Shown here piece after piece: positions 1,390 through 42,174 of a stretch of DNA of 64,000 bases. Both the position numbers and the translations under genes were made by a program. Origin of the DNA: Bacillus subtilis subsp. subtilis str. 168 (GTDB taxonomy: Bacteria > Bacillota > Bacilli > Bacillales > Bacillaceae); contig NC_000964.3 in the NCBI RefSeq assembly GCF_000009045.1, forward strand, positions 2,666,001 to 2,730,000. Reading direction: 5' to 3'. The notes beneath the pieces were generated by a model, which was not told where the DNA came from, ran no database searches, and worked only from the letters and a program-made list of their open reading frames with translations. Positions within the stretch are counted from its first letter, which is position 1, and every line of letters begins with the position of its first letter.

Positions 1390-2490
1390 CTAAAATCTTG
1401 GATAGTTTCGGCCTCCAAGTTCTTGTATATCAAAAAAGTTAAATACACCATTTTTATCATCTACTGCCCTTTTCAGTGTTTCGTCTCCTCCGTAATTACA
1501 GTAGCACCAGATTTCAACGTAATCTCCTTTATTCATGGGTACAGTCGCATTGCCGTTTAAACCAAGATTCATCCCATTATCCTTTTCCTGAAAGTCTCCT
1601 CTTACATGGTGCAGTGTTTTATATGCTTTTCCATTTAGGTAAACCTTCAAATGAAAGTTTATATAAGATGTATAATTTAAGGTATATATACTTGCCCCGA
1701 TTAAGTACATTCCATCGTTCGGAGCAATAAATCGATTGTTTTTAGTATCAAAAGCATTATGGCTATCCTTGATGACCCTGTTAAATGCAATTTTAGTGTG
1801 ATCAATCTTTTTTAAATACTGAACACCTGTAGTTCCAATATTCGCATGAGCAAAACCTGATATCTTTTGCCACGGAGTCCAGCCTGAACCACTCCACCAG
1901 TGTCTAATCCAAACTCCTGTACTGTCATAGTAAGTCCCAGACTCATTCCCTGTTCCGTAAAAGTATTGAGTGAAACGGTAATTATTATATTTTTCATTTT
2001 TGACAATGCCATAACCCAAGGGGTAGCCTGTAGTATTTCCCTGCCCAATGTCCATTAAGGTCAGTCCTAAAGGATATTCTTCCCCTCCTGTTCTTGCATC
2101 TTGAATAGCATTGTCTCCAGTAATTAACGTCAGATTGTTATTTTTATAGTTGGTATCCACGTAATATTTTGCATCCGATAAAGCCTTATCCGCTTTTTCC
2201 TGAGCTCCGACAATTGTTTCTTTTGCATTCCAATTCTCCCGTTCCACTGGTGTAATGTGCCGTTGTAAATCATTACGATGCTCTTCAAATTCTTTTTTCG
2301 AAGCTTGCTGTACATTATCAACGTTCCCTAGCCCGATTTGCGCCTTTGTTGTATTGTGAGGGTTGTTCATGTCATTTTTATGTACAGCTAAATCTTTATG
2401 CGCATCTTGAATGCCTTTCTCCCAACGGTTCACATCATCTTCATTAATCGGATCGTCCGGGAGCCAATCTGTTTTTGCATCATAAGCCAT
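1390..2490 (-). CDS. yqcC: Tail fibre / receptor-binding protein with C-terminal C1q-like domain
   Basis: 366 aa; N-terminal KTDW...D.NRWE anchor; NPHNTTKAQIGLGNVDN tail repeat; C-terminal IAFNRVIKDSHNAFD...FIAPNDGMYLI C1q-like pattern. Confidence 0.8.
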   Translation of the reverse strand: MAYDAKTDWLPDDPINEDDVNRWEKGIQDAHKDLAVHKNDMNNPHNTTKAQIGLGNVDNVQQASKKEFEEHRNDLQRHITPVERENWNAKETIVGAQEKADKALSDAKYYVDTNYKNNNLTLITGDNAIQDARTGGEEYPLGLTLMDIGQGNTTGYPLGYGIVKNEKYNNYRFTQYFYGTGNESGTYYDSTGVWIRHWWSGSGWTPWQKISGFAHANIGTTGVQYLKKIDHTKIAFNRVIKDSHNAFDTKNNRFIAPNDGMYLIGASIYTLNYTSYINFHLKVYLNGKAYKTLHHVRGDFQEKDNGMNLGLNGNATVPMNKGDYVEIWCYCNYGGDETLKRAVDDKNGVFNFFDIQELGGRNYPRF

Positions 2491-2492
2491 TG

Positions 2493-2765
2493 TTAAACCA
2501 CCTCAAAAGTAATCCTAAAATCTAGCGTTCTATTATTACTAACGTCTAAATCTGTTGTTCTTTCCGTAATCACGTTGTTTTGATCATCAAGTATCTGAAC
2601 ACTCTTAATATGTTTGATGTCTTCCTCTCGTTGAGTAAGCACCGTGACAACGGCACCCTGAATGGTGAGTTCCACAATTTCTGTTTCATTTCCATTCAGC
2701 AGCACTTTCGATATTCTATTTTTCAAATCTGCAGCTGTACGCTCTCTATAAAGCTGTGTAATCAT
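2493..2765 (-). CDS. yqcB: Phage tail/baseplate-associated small protein
   Basis: 90 aa ORF coupled (ATGA) to the upstream gene in the baseplate operon. Confidence 0.75.
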
Positions 2766-3340
2766 ACAAGGACCACCTCGTTATTATTGAGCGTGACGGA
2801 ATAACCTACCTTTAGCTCACTTGCTTTTCGATACCTTCTGTTATTCAAAATGACAGTATCTTTTATTTGGAGTGGCTCATTCAAAGCAGCTCGCAAGGTA
2901 TATGCCAAATGAGCTGGCTTCATATTCTCCAATGTTTCTATGAGCTCGCTCATATGCTGCATATCATCTATATCAATATCAACCTTAAAACGGTACTCTC
3001 CGGGAAGCAGCCGAACCTGAGCTGACGGATTTTTCAGGAACCGGTTCAACGCGTGTTCAATGGCCCTATATGTTGCCGGCGGTATATTGGACATTTTAGA
3101 GATTAGGCGCAATCGGCGGATCTCATCGGTGTCACCTGATTCCCGCGGTACGTTCAAAATCTTTTCCCATCGTTCAAGCCCCCAGGTTGCCGTAGTAACA
3201 AACAGCTGATCTGTCAGATCAAAGATGCTGTTATTTTGCTTCTCAAATTCCGGAGCTTCCGCTTTAAGAAGTTCAGCCATTTCCTTTAACTTGGTAAGGA
3301 ACGGCGGCAGGTAAGCAGTCATTTCATCGAGTTTGCTCAA
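2762..3340 (-). CDS. yqcA: Baseplate wedge protein (XkdU / DUF2313-like)
   Basis: 192 aa; [15 protein letters not shown] motif; follows baseplate J. Confidence 0.85.
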
Positions 3341-9700: not shown

Positions 9701-11463
9701 CGTTTTGGAATTAATTTTCGGATTACGCCTGCTGCATCACTTCCGACAGTACCTATGCCTTTTAACAGCGGACGAAGTATTTTCAAATAACCAATCAATC
9801 CAATTAAAGAGGGGATCACAACTTTAATCGCTGTTTTCAAATCATCCCAATGGTTGACGCTCCACTCAATGGCTACGTTTAACTTATCACCTATCTCCTC
9901 ACCTAGATCAGCAATATCTTTTTTGATCTCTTTAAGTTTTTCCTGACCTTCTTTACTGTTAATGAACGAGCTGATTTTATCAAAGGCCGGTCCTAATCCA
10001 GTTAGCAGAGAGGTTCCCATATCCTTAGATATGCTTTCAAAATCTCTCATGGCATCATTAACCGGTGTCATCGGGTTATTATCCCGAAGTTTCGTAAAGC
10101 TTCGTTCCAATTCACCGCTTGTTTTGGCACTTGTACCAATACCCTCAGCCATATCTAAAATAGGCTGCTTAAGGTCTTCATATTGTGTCCCGATAAGCTC
10201 AGTCGCAATAGCAGCCCGCTTTGTTTTGTCTTTCACTTTAGAAAGGGCTTTTGCCACCCTAAATAAACTTTCCTCTCCGCTTATTGAACCATCTTTGAAG
10301 CCCTTGAACATTTTCTTAGTTTCCTTGGCTCCGAACAGTGTTTTAAATGCGTCCACTTGACTATCAGACATTTCGGTTCGGCGGATGTTAAACTCACGCA
10401 TACTATCGGCTAGGTTATCGAAGTTTCTGGCTCCACCCTTTGTTCCTTTTATCATCGCGTTTGCAATTTGGCCGCCTGTGAGCTTCAAGTCTTTAAAGGT
10501 GGAACTGTATTCATTCATCGTGTCTAATAAATCATCAGCCTGGTCACCGGCATTCCGGTATACATAAGCAATTAAGTCTCCGCTTTGTTTCCCAGACAAT
10601 TTCAAGTTGTTATACATTGAACTGAAAGCACGATCTACCTCTGCCTGATCAGCATTCATAAGCTGGGCAATCTTACTTGATGACTCAGTCAATTCAGCCA
10701 GAGCTTTTTTAGACGCCCCTGTCTGTTGCGATAAGTTTCTTAGAGATAAACTGACTTCTTCCCGAGAACTGCCCGCTTTATTGTTGAAATAGATCTGATC
10801 CGTCATTTTTGCAACATCTTTCTTATTAACGTTTGAAGTTGCTGACACATAAGCATCCTGAGACATTGTGCTTTTACCAGAACCCATAATTGAACCTGCA
10901 GAAAAACCACCTGCAACTGCCAGAGTAATGGTAGCACCCTTCAAGCTGTCTATTTTCGCTTCAATAGCATCCAGAGCCGCTGAAGCTCTATCCTTAATAG
11001 AAACAGTTGGCTCTGCATGTTCGCTATCTACATCAGTCACATGACGACGGATCTCATCTAATTGGTTAGAAGCATGATCACGTACTGAAACAGTTGGCTC
11101 AGCGTGCGAGCTATTCAAATCAGTGAGACCTCCACGGATCAAACGAAAACGTGGTGTAGCTTGATCATTTACGGAAACCGTCACCTCATGACTGCCTTCG
11201 GTAAGATCCTCTGCTTGCTGGCGTATAGAATGTAAGCCATTCGAAACTCGATCATCTAAACCCATTTCAAGCAATCGAGCCCGAGCCGTCAAACGGTTGG
11301 CTGATCGATCAATTTGCCGCATAACTCTTTCAGTCCGGTCTTCAGCCTCAAAAATAAGAGGGCCATTAGCAGCCCTCTTAAGTCTTTCAGCATTGCCTTG
11401 TATCATTCGAAGCTTGCGGGAAATCTTATCATGTAATTCAAACGTGGCTGTTAGTTTAGCCAT
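6706..11463 (-). CDS. yqbO: Tail tape-measure protein with lytic transglycosylase (SLT) domain (XkdO-like)
   Basis: 1585 aa; helical and Trp-rich repeats; [17 protein letters not shown]...[15 protein letters not shown] motif. Confidence 0.92.
8490..9030 (-). repeat. 117-bp (39-aa) Trp-rich tandem repeats in tape measure, about 4.5 copies
   Basis: (S/E)TLF..KWWS.KW recurs five times at 117-bp spacing (about 8537, 8654, 8771, 8888, 9005). Confidence 0.9.
10930..11440 (-). repeat. 87-bp (29-aa) degenerate repeats at tape-measure N-terminus
   Basis: GAAACAGTTGGCTC at 11000 and 11087, related GAAACCGTCACCTC at 11174; D(R/Q/H) recurs every 29 residues over about 6 units. Confidence 0.75.
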
Positions 11464-11465
11464 AG

Positions 11466-11648
11466 TTAATTACCTCCCTTCTTCGCTTCTTTTTCTAACA
11501 GCTCAAGCTTAAAACCGATTAATCCATATAAGAGCGCCTTGAATGCTTTCGGAGCCTCATATAGTTCTCTTAATTCTGACGGGGCGTATTTGAGCTCATG
11601 CATAGCATAGTAAAGGTATACAGCCTCTTTGTCCCCGTCTTTTACTAG
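11466..11648 (-). CDS. -1 frame extension of tail assembly chaperone (gpGT-like product)
   Basis: Slippery A AAA AAC directly before the yqbN TAG; the -1 frame is open for 60 codons ([26 protein letters not shown]...KKGGN*) and ends 2 nt before the yqbO ATG. Confidence 0.8.
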
Positions 11649-34569: not shown

Positions 34570-34837
34570 ACTTCCCCTCCTTATTAAGCAACCAAACTCC
34601 CTGTTTGTTGCATAACGTACTTACTATTATTTTGACATAAATCCCTAAAAGACCTTTACTTTTCGAGGGAAATCCAGATGCGTGTTAAAATCATAATACT
34701 TACGAAAACAGTCATGATTAAACGGATTCATATTCCATCTCCTTAGACGCATTTTCCTATGAAAAAAGTCTTGATTTCCATATAATATTTAAACGAATCC
34801 AATTTTTAGATTGTCGTCTTTAAGGAGGTTTTTCATC

Positions 34838-35356
34838 TTGAGGTATACAAACAGTCATTTAGAGGATTGGATTGAAAACTTATACAAGAAGATTGATATT
34901 ACAGAACCAGAACAAATTAATTTTGAACGGATTGCCGAGGCTTTAGATATCAGGCTTTCGTTTAAACCTGTTACAAGCTTCGCACTTAAACACAGCGGAA
35001 TTTATAATATATGCTTGGACAGCCGTAAAAGCCGAACTGAACAATGGTATGATTTTGCTCATGAATTTTGCCATATATATAGACATGAAGGCGATAAAAA
35101 AACAATGCCTGCAACTTGGACTGATTATTTGGATTGGCAGTCCAATTATTTTACATATCACTTTTGCATTCCAACTTGCATGTTGCGTAATATCAACCTT
35201 CCGTACATACAATCACATGCAATTGAAAATGTAGCTTGGTTATTTAAGGTATCCCCTTCATTCGCTAAGAAACGTTTAAGCATTTATTACAGGAAACTGA
35301 CTCAACATTTATTTAGTCAAACTGTTACGGGAAATTTATGCCCCCCCTTTTTGTAA
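34838..35356 (+). CDS. yqaB: ImmA/IrrE-family metallopeptidase (anti-repressor-like)
   Basis: TTG 34838 after AAGGAGG; FAHEFCH HExxH motif and E/D..(A/S)N.F pattern. Confidence 0.88.
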
Positions 35357-35390
35357 TGAATAATGAAATCCTCATGCATTTGCGCGCATT
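35341..35390. other. skin att junction (5-bp AATGA crossover core at 35362-35366)
   Basis: Sigma-factor coding sequence begins abruptly at AAT GAA ATC CTC ATG (NEILM); AATGA is the known skin crossover core; the left att is outside the window. Confidence 0.8.
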
Positions 35391-35754
35391 GAAAAAAACA
35401 AAAAAAGACGTCTCCCTTCACGATCCGATCGGGCAGGATAAGGAAGGGAATGAAATAAGCCTGATTGACGTTTTGAAATCAGAAAACGAAGACGTGATAG
35501 ATACGATCCAGCTCAATATGGAGCTTGAAAAAGTGAAACAATACATTGACATTTTAGATGACCGTGAGAAGGAAGTGATTGTCGGGCGGTTTGGACTTGA
35601 TTTGAAGAAGGAAAAAACGCAGCGAGAGATTGCCAAAGAACTCGGTATCTCACGCAGCTATGTATCGCGGATTGAAAAGCGGGCGCTGATGAAGATGTTT
35701 CATGAGTTTTATCGGGCAGAGAAGGAAAAGCGGAAGAAGGCGAAGGGGAAATAA
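35362..35754 (+). CDS. spoIIIC: 3' half of sigK (mother-cell sigma factor), joined to spoIVCB after skin excision
   Basis: Sigma regions 3-4: [19 protein letters not shown] and [24 protein letters not shown]; lacks N-terminal regions. Confidence 0.95.
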
Positions 35755-35762
35755 TGCAGAAG

Positions 35763-35792
35763 AAGCCGGATCTCATACTCCGGCTTTCTCTA
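35763..35792 (+). terminator. sigK/spoIIIC terminator
   Basis: AAGCCGGA-TCTCATAC-TCCGGCTT followed by TCTCTATTT. Confidence 0.7.
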
Positions 35793-35838
35793 TTTGAAAG
35801 AGTTATGAAAATCATTTTTTTCATCGCTGATAAGCTCT

Positions 35839-36049
35839 CCGAGAAAGACAGGCAGGATCGTAACAAATAACTTGACTTATAATCCTCCCGCAGGCATTCA
35901 AAGCCGGACGTTCTAAAAGCTCTCCTGAGAAAATCCTTAGATCGGTATACTTCAGTACATCTTTAGTCCCTGCTTTCTTTATACAGGCCTCGATCTGGCT
36001 GTCGATGCTCGATCCCTTGATCGCTTGTTCCACGATATATTGCTATCAC
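35839..36049 (-). pseudogene. Degenerate 5' fragment of a serine recombinase nearly identical to SpoIVCA (CisA)
   Basis: GTG 36049 gives MIAIY, then after a frameshifting deletion EQAIKGSSIDSQIEACIKKAGTKDVLKY..FSGELLERPALN...ISQVICYDP..LSR; the catalytic RVS motif is deleted and DRLSR is mutated. SpoIVCA sequence compared from memory. Confidence 0.8.
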
Positions 36050-36143
36050 CCTGGATCTCCTGCCTATAAAGTTTTATTAAATAATGATAGCAATCGTTCA
36101 TGCATTTGTCAGTTTGCAGTCCCTCGATGATTATTACCTTCAT
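35979..36143 (-). CDS. yrkS: 54-aa ORF overlapping the recombinase relic; resembles the skin RDF N-terminus
   Basis: SD AAGGGGTGA; MKVIIIEGLQTDKCMNDCYHYLIKLYRQEIQGDSNISWNKRSRDRASTARSRPV*. Confidence 0.65.
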   Translation of the reverse strand: MKVIIIEGLQTDKCMNDCYHYLIKLYRQEIQGDSNISWNKRSRDRASTARSRPV

Positions 36144-36687
36144 AAAATACATCACCCCTTGGGTAATGCTGCGTAATACCTGTTTGTCCTAATGAGGTGA
36201 TTTTCAATGAGTATGAAAACAAATAAAAAAACCGATGGTTTGTACCATCGATCTGTTTTCTATATCACTAGGCCCTCAATATAGTAAATCTAGCTCATTG
36301 GTTATGAAAGCTTATTTTCATTACACACTATATATTCATTTGTTATCATTTCTATACGTTTATATCAATTATGGTAAAAAATGGTTACAAAAACCCAATA
36401 AACGTCCAACCTAACTTTTTCATCTTATTTATTAAGAATTTTAACCTCTTCCTTGTGAAATAAAGAAGCGATTTTCATCTCCAAACAGTTAATGCTATTT
36501 CATCGGGACATGTCTGTTAAAGTAGCCAATAAATACATTCGGATATCCACTTACAACCACGATTCAATTTGATCCACTACAGATTTCTGAGCTGACATTA
36601 AACAGATAGAGTTATAAAAATCTGTACCAGTTCCCTTTCACAATTAGGACATTTCGGCGGCGTTTCGGCATAATGCGAACTAATTTA

Positions 36688-37107
36688 TTAATGTTCAACA
36701 ACAGAATTTCGTCTATTGGCAATAAAGAATCCACAAATCATTGCAAGAATGGCCATCGCCCACCAGAACGTTGAGATCGCCTGATCATGATCGATGATAA
36801 TCAAACGAATGACAGCTGTGATGCCAATATAAATGAAGTAGCGAAGCGGAAAATGAAAGTCTGATTTGAAGTATTTGATAATCAAAGCAATGAACTCAAA
36901 GTACATGAAGAATATAAGCAGTTCTCCAAGCATCTCATAATAGCTGTCCACTTTGTTGAACAGTGACTTGTATACGAATAGCACAATGTACCAAGTCTCG
37001 CTGATCAGAAGTGCGCTTAAGGCTAACGCCAGAAAGAACAGACAGACGTTGAGAAGCGCTTGTAACAGGTAAGGCACCTTTTTGAATTTGTTAGAAAATC
37101 TCATCAT
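36688..37107 (-). CDS. psiE: PsiE-family phosphate-starvation-inducible membrane protein
   Basis: FFMYFEFIALI.KYF...HFPLRYFIYIGITAVIRLIIIDH motif. Confidence 0.9.
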   Translation of the reverse strand: MMRFSNKFKKVPYLLQALLNVCLFFLALALSALLISETWYIVLFVYKSLFNKVDSYYEMLGELLIFFMYFEFIALIIKYFKSDFHFPLRYFIYIGITAVIRLIIIDHDQAISTFWWAMAILAMICGFFIANRRNSVVEH

Positions 37108-37149
37108 GTTGTCTCCTATTTCAATATATTCGTGGTTTTTATTCTCAGC

Positions 37150-38448
37150 CTACATCTTGGTGTTCCAAAATCGTAGCACAATGTAGTACTTAGAATTCTT
37201 TTGTATACTGTGAAACTGTCCCTGCATGCGGGACATCATTCGCGCAATGCTTCTTTCACCGAGTCCGTTGCTTTCCGGTGTTATATCTGCAAGTTTAATC
37301 GTATTGCTAACATGGATCTCAAATATCTCTTGATCCGATACAAACGTGATACTGATTTTTTCTTCCGGATCTGCGTATTTCAATAAGTTTGACATCACAT
37401 TATCAAATACACGACCAAGCTCCTCCAAATTCACGTTAATATAGGTTTCCGGCAGCTCGCCTGAAATATGGACCCGAAAATGCTCCTGATGAAGGATAGC
37501 AATCTGATCTGATATTAGATCGTAGATCACTTCTTTCACTGCAACGGTCTCCAGATCGGCCTCATATTCCTTGTTCAGCAGGAAATACGCAAACAGATTG
37601 TCAGACAAGCTTTTTAATTGCAGTGCTTTACCATAAGCATTGGCTACATACCGATCTTTGCTGGCACCCGCTTCGCCTCCCTCTTTTTTGGCAAACTCCA
37701 GATTCATGATCAGCGACGTCAGCGGTGTGCGCATATCGTGCGACATTTCGGTAACCAGGCTGCGGCTCTCAGCTTGCAATTCCTCGATAGCTTTAAGTTT
37801 ATCCAGGAAAGCTTTCCGCAGATCCTCAATGCTCTTTGCAATCATCGCTAATTCATCATGCCCTTTTATCGTCATCTCGTAGTCCAGTTCGCCCCCTTCA
37901 AGAATATGAATCTCTTGATGAATCGTTTTAAGGTAGCGAAGACTTTGGCGAATTCCGAAGAGAACAATGATTAAAAAGATGAGGGTTGCCCCGAGCAAAT
38001 CCAATGCAAAGGCCAGATCATAATATCGGGAAGAGTAGAAACCGTCGATAATGACTCGTCCTTCACCATCGCTAAACTTGACAGGATGTGAATGATTTTG
38101 AGCGTACTGAGTCAGCTTTTCCTTTCCATAATCCGATTCGGAATAAATAGAATCATATTGCAGCTCCTGATCCTTGAATATGGTGAGGTTAATGTAATTT
38201 TCTTTTTTGACCCACTCGCCAAACGCTTTTCTATCTGATGTAGACAACTCATTTTCTGAAACGTACTTGCTGAATTTTTGAATGTATCTTGCTGACTCCT
38301 CGTGATAATACTCTTCCGAACTCAGATATCCCTCGATCAGATCATCTGTGATCTTTTGCAACGTCAGAAAGATCACACCACTCACAATCGCAGCAACCAT
38401 TATCAGCAAAGCCAGTTTTTTGGTTAGCGTAAATTTAAGATGCGCCAA
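37150..38448 (-). CDS. yrkQ: Sensor histidine kinase
   Basis: Two TM segments, HAMP (GHDEL), H-box MSHDMRTPLT, N-box NVMSNLLKY, GLG. Confidence 0.92.
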   Translation of the reverse strand: MAHLKFTLTKKLALLIMVAAIVSGVIFLTLQKITDDLIEGYLSSEEYYHEESARYIQKFSKYVSENELSTSDRKAFGEWVKKENYINLTIFKDQELQYDSIYSESDYGKEKLTQYAQNHSHPVKFSDGEGRVIIDGFYSSRYYDLAFALDLLGATLIFLIIVLFGIRQSLRYLKTIHQEIHILEGGELDYEMTIKGHDELAMIAKSIEDLRKAFLDKLKAIEELQAESRSLVTEMSHDMRTPLTSLIMNLEFAKKEGGEAGASKDRYVANAYGKALQLKSLSDNLFAYFLLNKEYEADLETVAVKEVIYDLISDQIAILHQEHFRVHISGELPETYINVNLEELGRVFDNVMSNLLKYADPEEKISITFVSDQEIFEIHVSNTIKLADITPESNGLGERSIARMMSRMQGQFHSIQKNSKYYIVLRFWNTKM

Positions 38449-39130
38449 ATCGATATCCTCTTCCCCATTCAGTTTTTATATAAACCGGACGTGCCGGATC
38501 ATCCTCAATTTTGGAGCGCAGCTTCCGTATATGCACCATCACCGTATTGTTGGAACAGTAAAAGTAAGGCTGTCCCCACACACTCTCATATATATTTTGG
38601 GCAGAAAATATTTTGTTGCGTTTGTTCATCAGAAGTTTCAGGATACGATACTCCAGATCTGACAACTTGATTTGCTTCTCCTCTTTCCACACCTCATTAA
38701 ATTCTTCGCTCACTCTTAGTTTGCCCCCGATAAGAAATGTTTCTTCCTGTTCCTTCTTTTCCTGATAGATAGTATATCTGCGTAATTGAGCAATCACTCT
38801 AGCGTGAAGTTCCTCTTCCGAGAATGGTTTAGTCATATAATCATCGCCGCCGGCGAGTAATCCCTCAGTTTTATCGAGTGTACTCGATCTGGCCGTCAGA
38901 AACAGAATCGGGACGTTAGAGGATTTCCTGATGTGCTGACATGTTTCAATTCCCGAAATGCCTGGCATCATAATATCCAAAATAACCAAATCAAGCGAGT
39001 CATTCACAAGTTGCAATGCTCGCTTTCCATCCTTGGCTCTTAGCACCTCGTAACCTGCACGTGTAAGGGATTCCTCCAAAAGATCACCAATATCCTCATC
39101 ATCCTCTACGACTAATATTCGATAGGCCAT
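38435..39130 (-). CDS. yrkP: OmpR-family response regulator
   Basis: Receiver (VEDD, LDIMMP, LTA, KPF) plus winged helix (NTVMVHIRKLRSKIE, WGRGY). Confidence 0.94.
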   Translation of the reverse strand: MAYRILVVEDDEDIGDLLEESLTRAGYEVLRAKDGKRALQLVNDSLDLVILDIMMPGISGIETCQHIRKSSNVPILFLTARSSTLDKTEGLLAGGDDYMTKPFSEEELHARVIAQLRRYTIYQEKKEQEETFLIGGKLRVSEEFNEVWKEEKQIKLSDLEYRILKLLMNKRNKIFSAQNIYESVWGQPYFYCSNNTVMVHIRKLRSKIEDDPARPVYIKTEWGRGYRFGAS

Positions 39131-39222
39131 GTCTCTCTCACCTCATGATTCTTGTTGTTATTTCTCGTGTGTCCTTACTATATATCGTTCATAGTAATAA
39201 GTACGTTATAAGATACTACGTA

Positions 39223-39311
39223 AATCTTAACAATTTATGAAAGCTGATGCTCGCCACAAATTTGTCACATTTTCTAAAAAAAATGATGACTCTTCATAAA
39301 TTGTTAAGATT
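39223..39311. promoter_or_regulatory. Pair of inverted 19-bp boxes between divergent yrkP and yrkO
   Basis: AATCTTAACAATTTATGAA (39223-39241) and its exact reverse complement (39293-39311). Confidence 0.7.
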
Positions 39312-39397
39312 CGGTCTTTATATTTATCCATTGTAAGGCTCAAGTTTTTCAGATCCGCACTACACATTGCCGTGATAAATGGGAAAGGAGTATTGAT

Positions 39398-40615
39398 ATG
39401 ATTGTACAAAAAGAAGGACGCGGGCAACCGGTGAGTCTGCGGGAACGGGTTCATTTTCTGGACATCGTACGAGGATTTGCCTTGCTTGGCATTATTATTG
39501 TCAATTATTTTCTGATCGTAGATTCAGTAAAGGGATTCGAAATGGCCTCCGATGACGTACTGCATAAGCTGGTTTCCTGGTTTGCCGAAGGGAAATTCGT
39601 TACGTTATTCTCCTTCCTGTTCGGAGTCGGGTTTATGATCTTTATGGATCGAGCCGCGCAGAAGGTAGAGAGTCCCAACAAGCTGTTTGCCCGCAGGTTA
39701 TCTATCCTGTTGGGATTTGGCATTTTGCACATCACATTTGTTTGGGTCGGTGACATATTGGCCTTTTACGCCGTAAGTGGCTTCCTGTTACTCGCCTTCT
39801 ATAAACGCACGGCCAAAACGGTGCTTAGATGGATTATCGCACTTATCGTGTTTCAATTCCTGACTCCTGTTTTCACAATGTTGTACAATGTCATCAATAC
39901 TGCAGGGTCAAAAAACCCGAATTTTTCAGAGTTTACTTTGTTTAGCCACAGCAGCCTTACCTACATGGAATCCATCAGCACTCGGTGGACAGATATGGTC
40001 ACGATGGCTGCCGGCTCTTTCTCTATGATCTATTCCATGTTTCTCATGTTTCTGCTGGGCGTGTACTTTGTTAAGATGGAATTTTTCAAAGACATGGAAG
40101 CGAAAAAGCCTATATGGAAGCGTATCTGGATCATTAGCACAATCGCTTTTCTAATAACACAAAGCAGTATATTACTAGACATGTTTAATCTTTCTGAGAA
40201 TATGCTGTGGAAGGACATTTCCTCTGTCTTGGGTCAAAATGGCGGCTTAACCGGAAGTATGTTTTATATGAGCACTTTTGCAATGCTGTTTCTATACCTT
40301 CCTCAGCTGCGAGGCCCTATGATGATATTCACCAAAGTCGGACGGATGTCATTGACCTGTTATCTGCTTCACTCTATCATTGGAACAGTTCTGTTCCTCA
40401 GGTACGGATTCGGGCTTGCGGATCATATTCAATCCGCCGGCACGTTCATGTTCAGTCTGGCCGTGTACTTCGTTCTTATGAGCTTTAGTACATTGTGGTT
40501 GAAACGGTTTAGGTACGGTCCGATGGAATTAGTATGGCGCAAGCTGACGTACGGCAAAGTAAACGGGAGTCCCAAAGCAACTCCGCTGCATTCGGAAAAA
40601 TCTATTCAGAAATAA
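39398..40615 (+). CDS. yrkO: DUF418 integral membrane protein
   Basis: [29 protein letters not shown] and GPME motifs. Confidence 0.9.
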
Positions 40616-41126
40616 CCCCCTTGCACAGATTGCATGACTTCAAATTAGTGTTGTTGAATGAAGCGGGCATTAAACGGACAGATTTGATATATGGACTAGT
40701 TATTTTTATATCATTTAGGCTTCTTTGGGCTAATAAATCCACCAGAGTTTACTCAATGTGCATTGCTCATGATCGAATCTAAATTGAATCTTTTACGCAT
40801 GTTCATAGTCAAAGGCGCCTCATTCGACTATTTTTGTAACTTTTCGCAGGAAAAATTCGAGAATGATGACAAATCCCGCATACGACACTTAATACGGTAG
40901 TGAACAATAGTAAATTAGGGTTACATGCAGCTTGTTTTCCAATGAAACAAAGAAAAAGAATCATACAAAAAGACAGGAGAAAGCTTTTGAAGTATTTTAA
41001 CGCCAAATTTACCGCGGAAGAAAGAGCGATGGAATCACTTTTTTGTGAAAAGGCCTCGCAGAGCAGCTCGAATGTTTTACTGAACGACTGAACTCTATAT
41101 TTTAGCAACTGAGGGAGTGAACAATC

Positions 41127-41684
41127 ATGAAAACTAAAAATGAACCAAAAGTTATTCTGGAACTAGCAAAGGAATCTGATCTGCCAGAATTCCAAAAAAA
41201 ATTACAAGAAGCCTTTGCGATCGCCGTGATTGAAACGTTCGGTGATTGCGAAGATGGGCCGATTCCATCGGACAATGATGTTCAGGAGTCTTTCAATGCT
41301 CCCGGAGCAGTGGTATATCATATTCTTCAGGATGGTAAGAATGTCGGTGGTGCAGTAGTACGTATCAACAGCCAAACAAATCATAATTCGCTAGATTTAT
41401 TCTATGTATCTCCAGAATATCACAGCCAAGGGATTGGTCTTTCTGCTTGGAAAGCCATTGAAGCACAGTATCCGGATACTGTGCTTTGGGAAACCGTGAC
41501 ACCTTATTTCGAAAAGCGAAATATCAACTTCTATGTGAATAAGTGTGGATTTCATATCGTAGAGTTCTACAATGAACATCACTCTAATCCGCATATGCAT
41601 CGCAATGGACGTGAAGATGACAAGCCCCTACTGAATGATGATGACTTTTTCAGATTTGTAAAGATTATGAAAAAAAAGGACTAA
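41127..41684 (+). CDS. yrkN: GNAT-family acetyltransferase
   Basis: LFYVSPEYHSQGIG acetyl-CoA motif; NINFY..CGF. Confidence 0.88.
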   Translation: MKTKNEPKVILELAKESDLPEFQKKLQEAFAIAVIETFGDCEDGPIPSDNDVQESFNAPGAVVYHILQDGKNVGGAVVRINSQTNHNSLDLFYVSPEYHSQGIGLSAWKAIEAQYPDTVLWETVTPYFEKRNINFYVNKCGFHIVEFYNEHHSNPHMHRNGREDDKPLLNDDDFFRFVKIMKKKD

Positions 41685-42174
41685 ACAATTGAACACGGCG
41701 AGATGCCGCAGAGAGTTGCTGGTAACTTTTTTATATTTCATTATCAGAGGAAGGTAATAATGATGTTTAAAAGGTGTTTTGATCCCTGTCTCATAAACAG
41801 GGGTCAAAACACCTTTGAATCATCGGTTTCTTTTCTGACATATACCACGCCCACTAGTCCCTCAACATAGTAAAAACATATCATGAGTTACAAAAGCTTT
41901 TATTCAAAGCATATGTTTATTTTATTTATACTTATTTTCATCATTTTTCAGAATTCTGGACACAAATCGGGTACCTATTAGAGGCCAAGGAACTCTACAT
42001 TTCATTAAGAAATACGTACTCATTGCCCTGCTTTAATTAATTTTAAGCCCTCGCACTATGCCCCCCCCTGAATTAAGTATTTGATGTAACTTTGAAATTA
42101 AGTTTATGAAAATCTGTCACAAACCCTTATTTCATAACACATCATTTGTTTCAGCTTCCCTCGCGAATACCGGA

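Follow-up and report, generated by a model that had tools for sequence, protein, structure and literature searches.

The window analysed here is a stretch of 64,000 nucleotides from the chromosome of Bacillus subtilis strain 168. It contains the right 35 kb of the skin element, then the 3' part of sigK and then the yrk region. The skin element as a whole has a size of 48 kb, which would place its live skr-spoIVCA module outside the window, at a distance of about 13 kb from its left end. The 3' segment of sigK (spoIIIC) begins at the attR junction, ends with the stop codon at 35752-35754, and shares 97.7% identity with residues 110-242 of the SigK encoded by an intact sigK. Between the sigK terminator and position 35820 the sequence is native sigK downstream DNA. 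From there to 36275 the minus strand is a decayed copy of the skin leader, of skr and of spoIVCA codons 1 to approximately 90, referred to here as the scar. Taken with the size of skin, the position of the scar means that it should form a direct repeat with the live module at a distance of roughly 46-48 kb, the live copy lying beyond the window. A search of Rfam over 35300-37200 gave no meaningful match. The features of this part of the window are as follows.

~35340-35352, attR junction between the sigK 3' part and the right end of skin
35353..35754, plus strand, sigK 3' segment (spoIIIC) including the stop codon, within ORF 35338-35754
35762..35787, plus strand, sigK terminator hairpin (terminator scan)
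terminator hairpin through 35820, native sigK downstream DNA, the flank common to all sigK-adjacent scars
35821..36049, minus strand, spoIVCA pseudogene fragment, codons 1 to ~90 (translations, alignments, tblastn, Pfam Resolvase E = 0.0014)
between 36034 and 36035, minus strand, site of a 14-nt deletion; SpoIVCA YVRVST codons gone, skr frame shifted past codon 36
35979..36143, minus strand, yrkS, a frameshifted skr copy of 54 aa, ATG at 36143, stop at 35979 (ORF list, alignment)
36084..36112, minus strand, sigma-70-like promoter match in yrkS codons 11-20 (CTGACA, 17 nt, TATCAT, with TG before the second hexamer)
36144..36206, minus strand, leader with Shine-Dalgarno sequence, homologous to the leaders of all live skr copies, with 4 differences in 63 nt
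36207..36275, minus strand, further upstream homology, common only to the live copies of loci L004, L006 and L007 and to other scars
36254-36229, minus strand, terminator-like hairpin, 85 nt upstream of yrkS

The broken copy of spoIVCA

The earlier note on this DNA had reported a SpoIVCA-like peptide on the minus strand 85 bp past the sigK stop codon, from which the catalytic RVS residues had been lost by deletion, and both observations were borne out. A GTG at 36049 on the minus strand opens the sequence MIAIY. One frame over, a 70-aa ORF (36033-35821, minus strand) reads MEQAIKGSSIDSQIEACIKKAGTKDVLKY..FSGELLERPALN..ISQVICYDP..LSR, with its N-terminal stretch also written out as EQAIKGSSIDSQIEACIKKAGTKDVLKY. 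The LSR codons end at 35839, which is 85 nt past the sigK stop. The SpoIVCA-like pieces were searched one by one, with no reading through stops. With a live SpoIVCA of 500 aa (from locus L006) as the tblastn query, residues 12-80 were matched at 77% identity (E = 2.6e-23). The match of the 70-aa piece to the Pfam Resolvase family (PF00239) is sub-threshold, at E = 0.0014 and 19.1 bits against a curated cut-off of 23.3.

As the live module of strain 168 is outside the window, Logan contig L001, which carries arsC, skr and spoIVCA, was used as a proxy. A scan of one genome per species provided 21 loci besides L001, of which nine have an intact skr and a spoIVCA of 500 aa, with the sigK 5' part coming next. 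In seven of these nine live copies sigK5'/attL lies within approximately 30-45 nt of the spoIVCA stop, and in the remaining two (L004 and L007) genes are inserted there. An exact-sequence look-up of two 64-aa Skr proteins found no contig. Compared with the consensus of the live copies over -63 to +270, the window copy differs at 24 of 319 aligned bases (92.5% identity), and on this basis the likeness is not due to chance. The homology runs from 35821 to 36206 against every live copy, and to approximately 36275 against the copies of L004, L006 and L007. It is therefore wider than the interval 35839-36143 given in the earlier note.

Four indels distinguish the window copy from the live copies: a 14-nt deletion, a 3-4-nt insertion, a 15-nt deletion and an 11-nt deletion. 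The 14-nt deletion, between 36034 and 36035, takes the YVRVST codons and is the reason why the catalytic-serine motif (YVRVSTEEQ) is absent from the fragment. The 15-nt deletion corresponds to the NRLRED codons, and the 11-nt deletion sits after the LSR codons. It is followed by a stretch matching codons 84-90, after which the sigK downstream DNA starts. The window copy contains no uninterrupted recombinase gene of approximately 500 codons with recombinase and zinc-ribbon/coiled-coil parts, its homology ending near codon 90 and the other three indels breaking its frame, whereas the live copies encode 500 aa. There is no attachment site at the 3' end of the fragment, the broken end being joined directly to sigK terminator DNA. 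Among the copies aligned, the exact 14-nt deletion was found only in the window, and it is absent from all fetched loci. Other B. subtilis proteins retrieved by a protein search with YrkS have different indels at the same site.

Scars and probable former cargo in related species

A scar adjoins sigK in at least eight relatives: Bacillus sp. N13C7 (L003), B. atrophaeus (L005), B. mexicanus (L008), B. rugosus (L010), B. spizizenii TU-B-10 (L011), B. inaquosorum (L012), B. spizizenii DV1-B-1 (L013) and B. halotolerans (L018). In L005, L008, L011 and L012 it lies beside an uninterrupted sigK of 242 codons, with no skin present. Being outside skin, the scar stays on the chromosome after excision, which explains its presence beside an intact sigK in lineages that have lost skin. 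The earlier note had proposed checking whether strains without skin keep the feature, and these four loci confirm that they do. All of the sigK-adjacent scars run into one common terminator flank of sigK. Seven copies (the window, L008, L010, L011, L012, L018 and the extra copy L002b) have both the 11-nt deletion and another one of approximately 28 nt, while L003 and L005b have less deleted forms of the same junction in which spoIVCA is kept to approximately codon 97. This shared junction and its graded deletions suggest a single origin, followed by lineage-specific erosion. Sequence L003 has a B. atrophaeus-type junction allele beside a subtilis-type sigK. Three decayed copies are present in B. 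inaquosorum, two of them with the sigK-terminator junction, and B. subtilis J27 has a rearrangement with its breakpoint inside the scar. In a tblastx synteny test, the right flanks past the scar were unrelated between species. An apparent divergence of approximately 24% in the spoIVCA-only part of L008 was discarded, as a deletion between two GAGAGCTT repeats had misled the alignment there.

To the right of the scar in the window is a block of genes, yrkR-yrkN, named here as in the strain 168 annotation. Its products, as identified with Pfam, are listed here.

36688..41684, mixed strands, yrkR-yrkN block, read as former skin cargo (Pfam, synteny with L004 and L018)
36688-37107, minus strand, PsiE-family protein
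37150-38448, minus strand, histidine kinase
38435-39130, minus strand, response regulator
39398-40615, plus strand, DUF418 membrane protein
41127-41684, plus strand, GNAT acetyltransferase

In B. tequilensis (L004), a live skr, a 500-aa spoIVCA and the sigK 5' part are contiguous with homologues of window positions 35838-40877 and 40990-41701 (92-94%), the yrkR-yrkN block having 91.9% identity. Beyond the yrk block of this species are an aldo-keto reductase, a MerR regulator and a skin-type LXG toxin with immunity genes, and part of this DNA matches the skin interior in L006 and L018. A walk from L004 towards the B. tequilensis sigK 3' end led only to a contig of 7.6 kb and did not reach that end. 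In B. halotolerans (L018), homologues of window 35967-41733 (93%) come after the scar, then two small skin fragments and, 7 kb past the scar, a second attR in direct orientation, consisting of the 3' end of yqaB joined to the first 70-100 nt of the sigK 3' part. The same three fragments, including the second attR, are found in direct orientation in B. atrophaeus (L005), 13 kb beyond sigK and the scar. Likewise, B. mexicanus (L017) has a decayed but near-complete yqaB'-attR-sigK3' copy approximately 23 kb from its intact sigK, encoding SigK residues 125-242. Between this intact sigK and the second sigK 3' copy lies a further decayed skr together with spoIVCA codons 1-202. In the 28 kb of the window to the right of 35800, blastn with 7-nt words and tblastn detected neither a second attR nor a second sigK 3' copy.

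The earlier note had proposed that the yrk genes to the right are the cargo arm of the element. This is supported for yrkR-yrkN (36.7-41.7 kb), in light of their contiguity with the live module in L004 and their bracketing by scar and second attR in L018. Nothing was found to extend it to the yrk genes right of approximately 41.8 kb.

The yrkS reading frame and conservation of its DNA

The open 54-aa ORF overlapping the spoIVCA-like start had been noted previously from the sequence, together with its strong Shine-Dalgarno sequence and its likeness to the N-terminus of Skr, and these points are correct. The Shine-Dalgarno sequence is AAGGGGTGA (36160-36152), with a spacing of 8 nt to the yrkS ATG, and the ORF (36143-35979) overlaps the GTG at 36049. 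Skr was identified in iScience in 2019 as a protein of 64 aa whose gene overlaps the start of spoIVCA by 101 nt (PMC6957869). The same overlap of 101 nt is seen in the fetched live copies, with skr at 10001-10195 and spoIVCA starting at 10095. Over residues 1-36, YrkS matches live Skr at 32 positions. The four replacements (P9L, A11T, I15M and K28Q) are all at variable positions. K28Q had been considered as a change at an invariant residue, which was dropped as position 28 is variable in the wider family. The remaining 18 residues of YrkS are an out-of-frame tail that is unrelated to Skr.

A protein search with YrkS found 20 small Bacillus proteins, including 64-aa forms with a C-terminus that corresponds to the third reading frame of the window. 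Neither Pfam nor PHROGs has a family for Skr or YrkS. The Skr-like family makes up 53 clusters at 50% identity in 1.84 billion proteins, and live Skr proteins range in length from 51 to 65 aa. The N-terminal positions that are conserved in the family are kept in YrkS (M1, V3, G8, D12-K13, C18-Y19, Y21-L22, Y26-R27, E29 and D33). The GIDRG stretch, from residue 37 to at least residue 49, is in frame in all 21 aligned family members, whereas YrkS loses the frame after codon 36. AlphaFold2 predicts a helix over residues 9-40 of Skr, with a pLDDT of 77-86 over residues 1-30 (moderate confidence) and disorder over residues 42-64. For YrkS it predicts a low-confidence helix. A Cys-x3-Cys zinc site in Skr was also considered and dropped, C14 not being conserved.

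In the live B. subtilis copy, the sigmaE promoter has been mapped to a site more than 200 bp ahead of the start of spoIVCA. The scar is homologous to the B. subtilis-type live copy only as far as 63 nt before the skr ATG, leaving the region of this promoter outside the copy. The 130 nt upstream of yrkS are instead in common with the live copies of L004, L006 and L007. The sigma-70-like match within yrkS scores 10/12 with TG and is directed to the sigK 3' end, although it is a consensus match only. Its bases are kept in most of the aligned copies.

The DNA of the leader and skr is more conserved than would be expected of a decayed copy. Between B. atrophaeus and the other scars it has 91-96% identity, against 59-62% at the third codon positions of sigK. 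In the window, L012, L018 and L005 its level of substitution is 4-7 times lower than that of the neighbouring part that belongs to spoIVCA alone, and the longest exact runs between scars and live copies measure 38-65 nt. Recent gene conversion within a genome was rejected as the cause, the scars being no closer to their own live copy. One explanation may be exchange of the scar region between species, for which the L003 allele can be compared.

It is unlikely that the conserved DNA itself matters and not the protein. The repeat of approximately 380 bp would in that case be an anchor for homologous recombination, permitting swaps of cargo or revival of the old copy, or else the sigma-70-like promoter would drive transcription towards the sigK 3' end. 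Conservation of -63 to +195 far above neutral and above the adjoining part, with no constraint at the level of the protein, is consistent with such a role, as are the exact runs to live copies, the three copies of B. inaquosorum with two of one junction, and the J27 breakpoint. Horizontal exchange between species would however give the same conservation, as illustrated by the L003 allele. The joining of a live module to the yrk block in B. tequilensis, where Skr has T11 and M15 in common with YrkS, is what a crossover within the repeat would give, yet it could equally well be the ancestral cargo order; the two shared residues fit either reading, and the arrangement may have arisen in either way. 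In a genome of the strain 168 type, a crossover between the repeats would delete the only sigK 3' end. The promoter, its 10/12 score with TG notwithstanding, is a match to a consensus.

YrkS itself probably lacks function. The decayed skr copies, taken over codons 1-31, have 7 synonymous to 22 nonsynonymous distinct changes, compared to 26:20 in the live copies (Fisher p = 0.008). Among the changes in the decayed copies are two nonsense codons and substitutions within the invariant NDCYHYLI motif, and the ratio of synonymous to nonsynonymous changes fits neutrality. Nonsense codons, frameshifts and mostly nonsynonymous changes in these copies indicate pseudogene-like evolution. The ORFs of the decayed copies are 17, 30, 32, 37, 54, 55, 55, 59, 64, 64 and 70 codons long. 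All four of the strain 168 changes are nonsynonymous.

These data make it very unlikely that YrkS is a working truncated paralogue of Skr which persists outside skin after excision, binds SpoIVCA through its N-terminal helix, and helps excision, competes with Skr or blocks re-integration. The open ORF, intact start codon and strong Shine-Dalgarno sequence in strain 168 would suit such a protein. So too would the retention of every family-conserved residue in positions 1-36, within the only part of Skr (residues 1-40) that AlphaFold2 models with moderate confidence, and live Skr lengths of 51-65 aa imply that the extreme C-terminus is dispensable. The scars of L008 and L013 still have a full skr of 64 codons. 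Against this, YrkS leaves the Skr frame at codon 37, ahead of the GIDRG stretch, and the 14-nt deletion and the tail that results from it are lineage-specific. The homology does not extend to the region of the mapped sigmaE promoter, and a terminator-like hairpin is just upstream. An array study lists yrkS with spoIVCA among the genes switched on late in sporulation media, although this signal is likely to be cross-hybridisation with the closely similar live skr-spoIVCA. Production of YrkS in the mother cell as a chromosomal modulator of SpoIVCA, which competes with Skr or prevents re-integration of the circle into the rebuilt sigK, is no likelier. The proposal in the earlier note that YrkS assists, competes with or polices excision is therefore not supported by its sequence evolution, given the 7:22 changes, the range of ORF lengths, the lineage-specific tail and the position of the mapped promoter region outside the homology.

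Origin of the scar and comparison with known systems

The scar is most probably (a probability of about 0.8) a non-functional remnant, the broken left end of an older copy of skin that once stood in tandem with the present one. Two observations make duplication the simplest history: the broken recombinase end abuts the sigK 3' flank, and the far end of the old copy carries a sigK 3' part. The earlier note had read the feature as the scar of an earlier or duplicated sigK-targeting element, in agreement with the shared junction in the relatives and with the second attR and sigK 3' copies of L018, L005 and L017. That it was left instead by an unrelated earlier phage with its own attachment site downstream of sigK is hardly credible: the region right of the scar is wholly different between species, as at an insertion hotspot, and no second attR is left in the window, but the break is within the recombinase gene instead of at the end of an element, no junction resembling an att site is present, the far ends in L018, L005 and L017 are sigK 3' joined to yqaB exactly as at attR, and the scar has the same orientation relative to sigK as the live module.

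The duplication of skin would go back to one ancestral event that joined a point approximately 70-100 nt past the sigK stop to a point near spoIVCA codon 97. As to its type, we infer either an unequal crossing-over that duplicated skin plus the sigK 3' end, or an imprecise excision with homologous re-insertion. The duplicated segment would have started at spoIVCA codon ~97, taken in skin and attR, and ended with the 3' part of sigK and its terminator. The product would have been, in order, sigK, its terminator, a truncated spoIVCA with skr, the cargo and the attR of the old skin, and a repeated sigK 3' end. Decay of the second skin copy would then have taken a different course in each lineage. 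Loss of the first copy by excision in the germ line would leave an intact sigK, the scar and the old copy, as in the species without skin, and retention of the first copy would lead to the state of strain 168. What remains in strain 168 is the leader, the frameshifted skr (yrkS), spoIVCA codons 1 to ~90 and yrkR-yrkN, and the old attR would have been lost. On this history yrkS would be open by chance and its product would not be needed for the excision of skin.

It follows that more than one generation of skin has probably occupied the sigK locus. The species that have an intact sigK with the scar (B. atrophaeus, B. inaquosorum, B. mexicanus and some B. spizizenii) would have had skin-bearing ancestors, or would have undergone exchange with skin-bearing lineages. 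The gene yrkS would be reassigned as an skr pseudogene, and yrkR-yrkN, which include the YrkPQ two-component system, as genes once carried by a prophage in place of 'chromosomal' ones. The repeat, which should be direct, could mediate deletion or exchange of cargo at a gene that is essential for development. Arrays, the mapping of short reads and PCR meant for skr or spoIVCA can likewise be misled by it. The scar reveals no new mechanism, and its informative part is the comparative history.

No account of the scar emerged from searches of the literature for yrkS, for pseudogenes or remnants of spoIVCA, and for skin together with the yrk genes, older subscription papers being outside the search. 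It is a real but ordinary pseudogene scar of a prophage integrase and its RDF, apparently undescribed before. It resembles the live skr-spoIVCA unit in its leader, its Shine-Dalgarno sequence, its overlap of a small RDF with a recombinase, its orientation to sigK and its identity of 92.5%. It differs from this unit in having codons 1 to ~90 only, no attL and a frameshifted skr, and in its position outside the excised segment. The same overlapping arrangement of the two genes is present in one sequenced phage, Bacillus phage PK1 (OM112209.1), where an unannotated Skr-like ORF overlaps the recombinase start by approximately 95 nt. Unlike the members of the Skr-like family, YrkS has no in-frame (G)IDRG continuation and no intact partner recombinase alongside. 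In the SprB-SprA pair of SPbeta and with the skin RDF of C. difficile, a small factor turns a large serine integrase to excision in the mother cell (PMC5499854, PMC5025042). Both of these are live systems, whereas the scar is a decayed copy, and they are compared here by description.

Cryptic prophage remnants and integrase pseudogenes beside attachment sites are a familiar kind of locus. The scar is like these remnants in its truncated integrase, its neutral decay, the variable cargo nearby and its presence in lineages without the element. It is unlike them in that its break meets the DNA flanking the target gene on the 3' side, and in that relatives keep a duplicated 3' end of this gene. The break at the 3' flank and the duplicated sigK 3' end together point to duplication of the element with the end of its target, rather than to erosion of one insertion.

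Deletions and rearrangement at the SpoIVCA start

The stretch that encodes the start of SpoIVCA and its catalytic-serine motif (window 36030-36045, with equivalents elsewhere) has undergone independent deletions of differing sizes. The scar in the window, a decayed skr-spoIVCA copy beside the 3' half of sigK (sigK3'), has lost 14 nt here. Copies in B. inaquosorum have deletions of 13, 18 and 50-59 nt, those in L003 (the scar beside sigK in Bacillus sp. N13C7) and L018 (B. halotolerans) are of 2 and 6 nt, and the B. subtilis proteins P0002, P0007, P0016 and P0017, found in a search with YrkS, add further sizes. The first 94 nt of skr have nearly no indels. The cluster could be a mutational hotspot at an AT-rich repeat, or could reflect selection against a truncated recombinase domain.

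A rearrangement at the scar is present in one strain:

L025 10001-13737: B. subtilis J27 (VLJL01000047.1)

Here codons 1-36 of YrkS, the product of the frameshifted skr copy, are fused to yqaB from codon 27 onwards in a single ORF of 82 aa. Mapping places one breakpoint at the ATATAT site of the scar (window 36036/36040) and the other within yqaB (window about 34890-34899). The intact sigK, along with the genes natively upstream of it, is in inverted orientation with respect to the yrk side.

A promoter match within skr

A consensus search feature lies inside the skr reading frame:

window 36084-36112, - strand: sigma-70-like promoter match, CTGACA, 17 nt, TATCAT, TG-extended, 10/12 (consensus match only)

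The match falls within skr codons 11-20, overlapping the invariant NDCYHYLI codons, and its bases are also found in most aligned skr copies. In the live element this putative promoter could be a source of spoIVCA transcripts that lack skr. In the scar the match, which is to the consensus only, is directed into sigK3'.

Layout of skin in related genomes

Two live copies have a gap between the spoIVCA stop and the 5' half of sigK (sigK5'):

L004 11782-13878: B. tequilensis, 2.3 kb, with genes for an MFS transporter and a MarR regulator
L007 11598-17896: Bacillus sp. N13C7, 6.3 kb

In the other 7 live copies sigK5' is within about 30-45 nt of spoIVCA. Given the two gaps, skin can therefore also carry cargo between the recombinase gene and attL.

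A different arrangement is found in Bacillus sp. WMMC1349 (NZ_JABJUQ010000007.1; L015 2423-11982):

10001-11597, + strand: live skr and spoIVCA, in the usual arrangement with sigK5'
11982-11632, - strand: sigK5', in the usual arrangement with skr-spoIVCA
2423-3157, + strand: yqaB 3' end, attR and sigK3'

As the yqaB-attR-sigK3' block is on the + strand, the two halves of sigK, and with them the att sites, are in mutually inverted orientation. Both att cores were found (AATGAGAT[A/T]TTAATG). With the att sites inverted, SpoIVCA and Skr would be predicted to invert the segment of ~8.9 kb instead of excising it, and would thereby rebuild sigK with no need for excision. This segment carries an LXG toxin gene and a lysin-like gene. 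The inverted layout may itself be an artefact of assembly.

Other pieces and relatives of the module

The last skin gene ahead of attR, and two isolated fragments in loci of related genomes, are as follows:

window 34811-35356: yqaB, IrrE/Peptidase_M78-type protein (Pfam E = 2e-24)
L013 161-265 (B. spizizenii DV1-B-1): skr leader and codons 1-19
L021 9952-10057: skr leader and codons 1-19

In B. halotolerans, B. atrophaeus and B. mexicanus, the duplicated piece consists of attR and the 3' end of this IrrE/Peptidase_M78-type gene. Each skr fragment is fused to a short stretch of DNA that several skin elements also have in their interior (L004 4235-4491). These fragments are additional small scars of the skr-spoIVCA module and lie about 10 kb away from the main scar.

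A relative of the module is found in a phage:

L024 3001-4585: Bacillus phage PK1 (OM112209.1)

It has an unannotated ORF of 63 codons with 44% identity to Skr; this ORF shares ~95 nt with the beginning of the annotated recombinase gene. The deposited genome of phage PK1 has the same RDF/integrase overlap as skr-spoIVCA.
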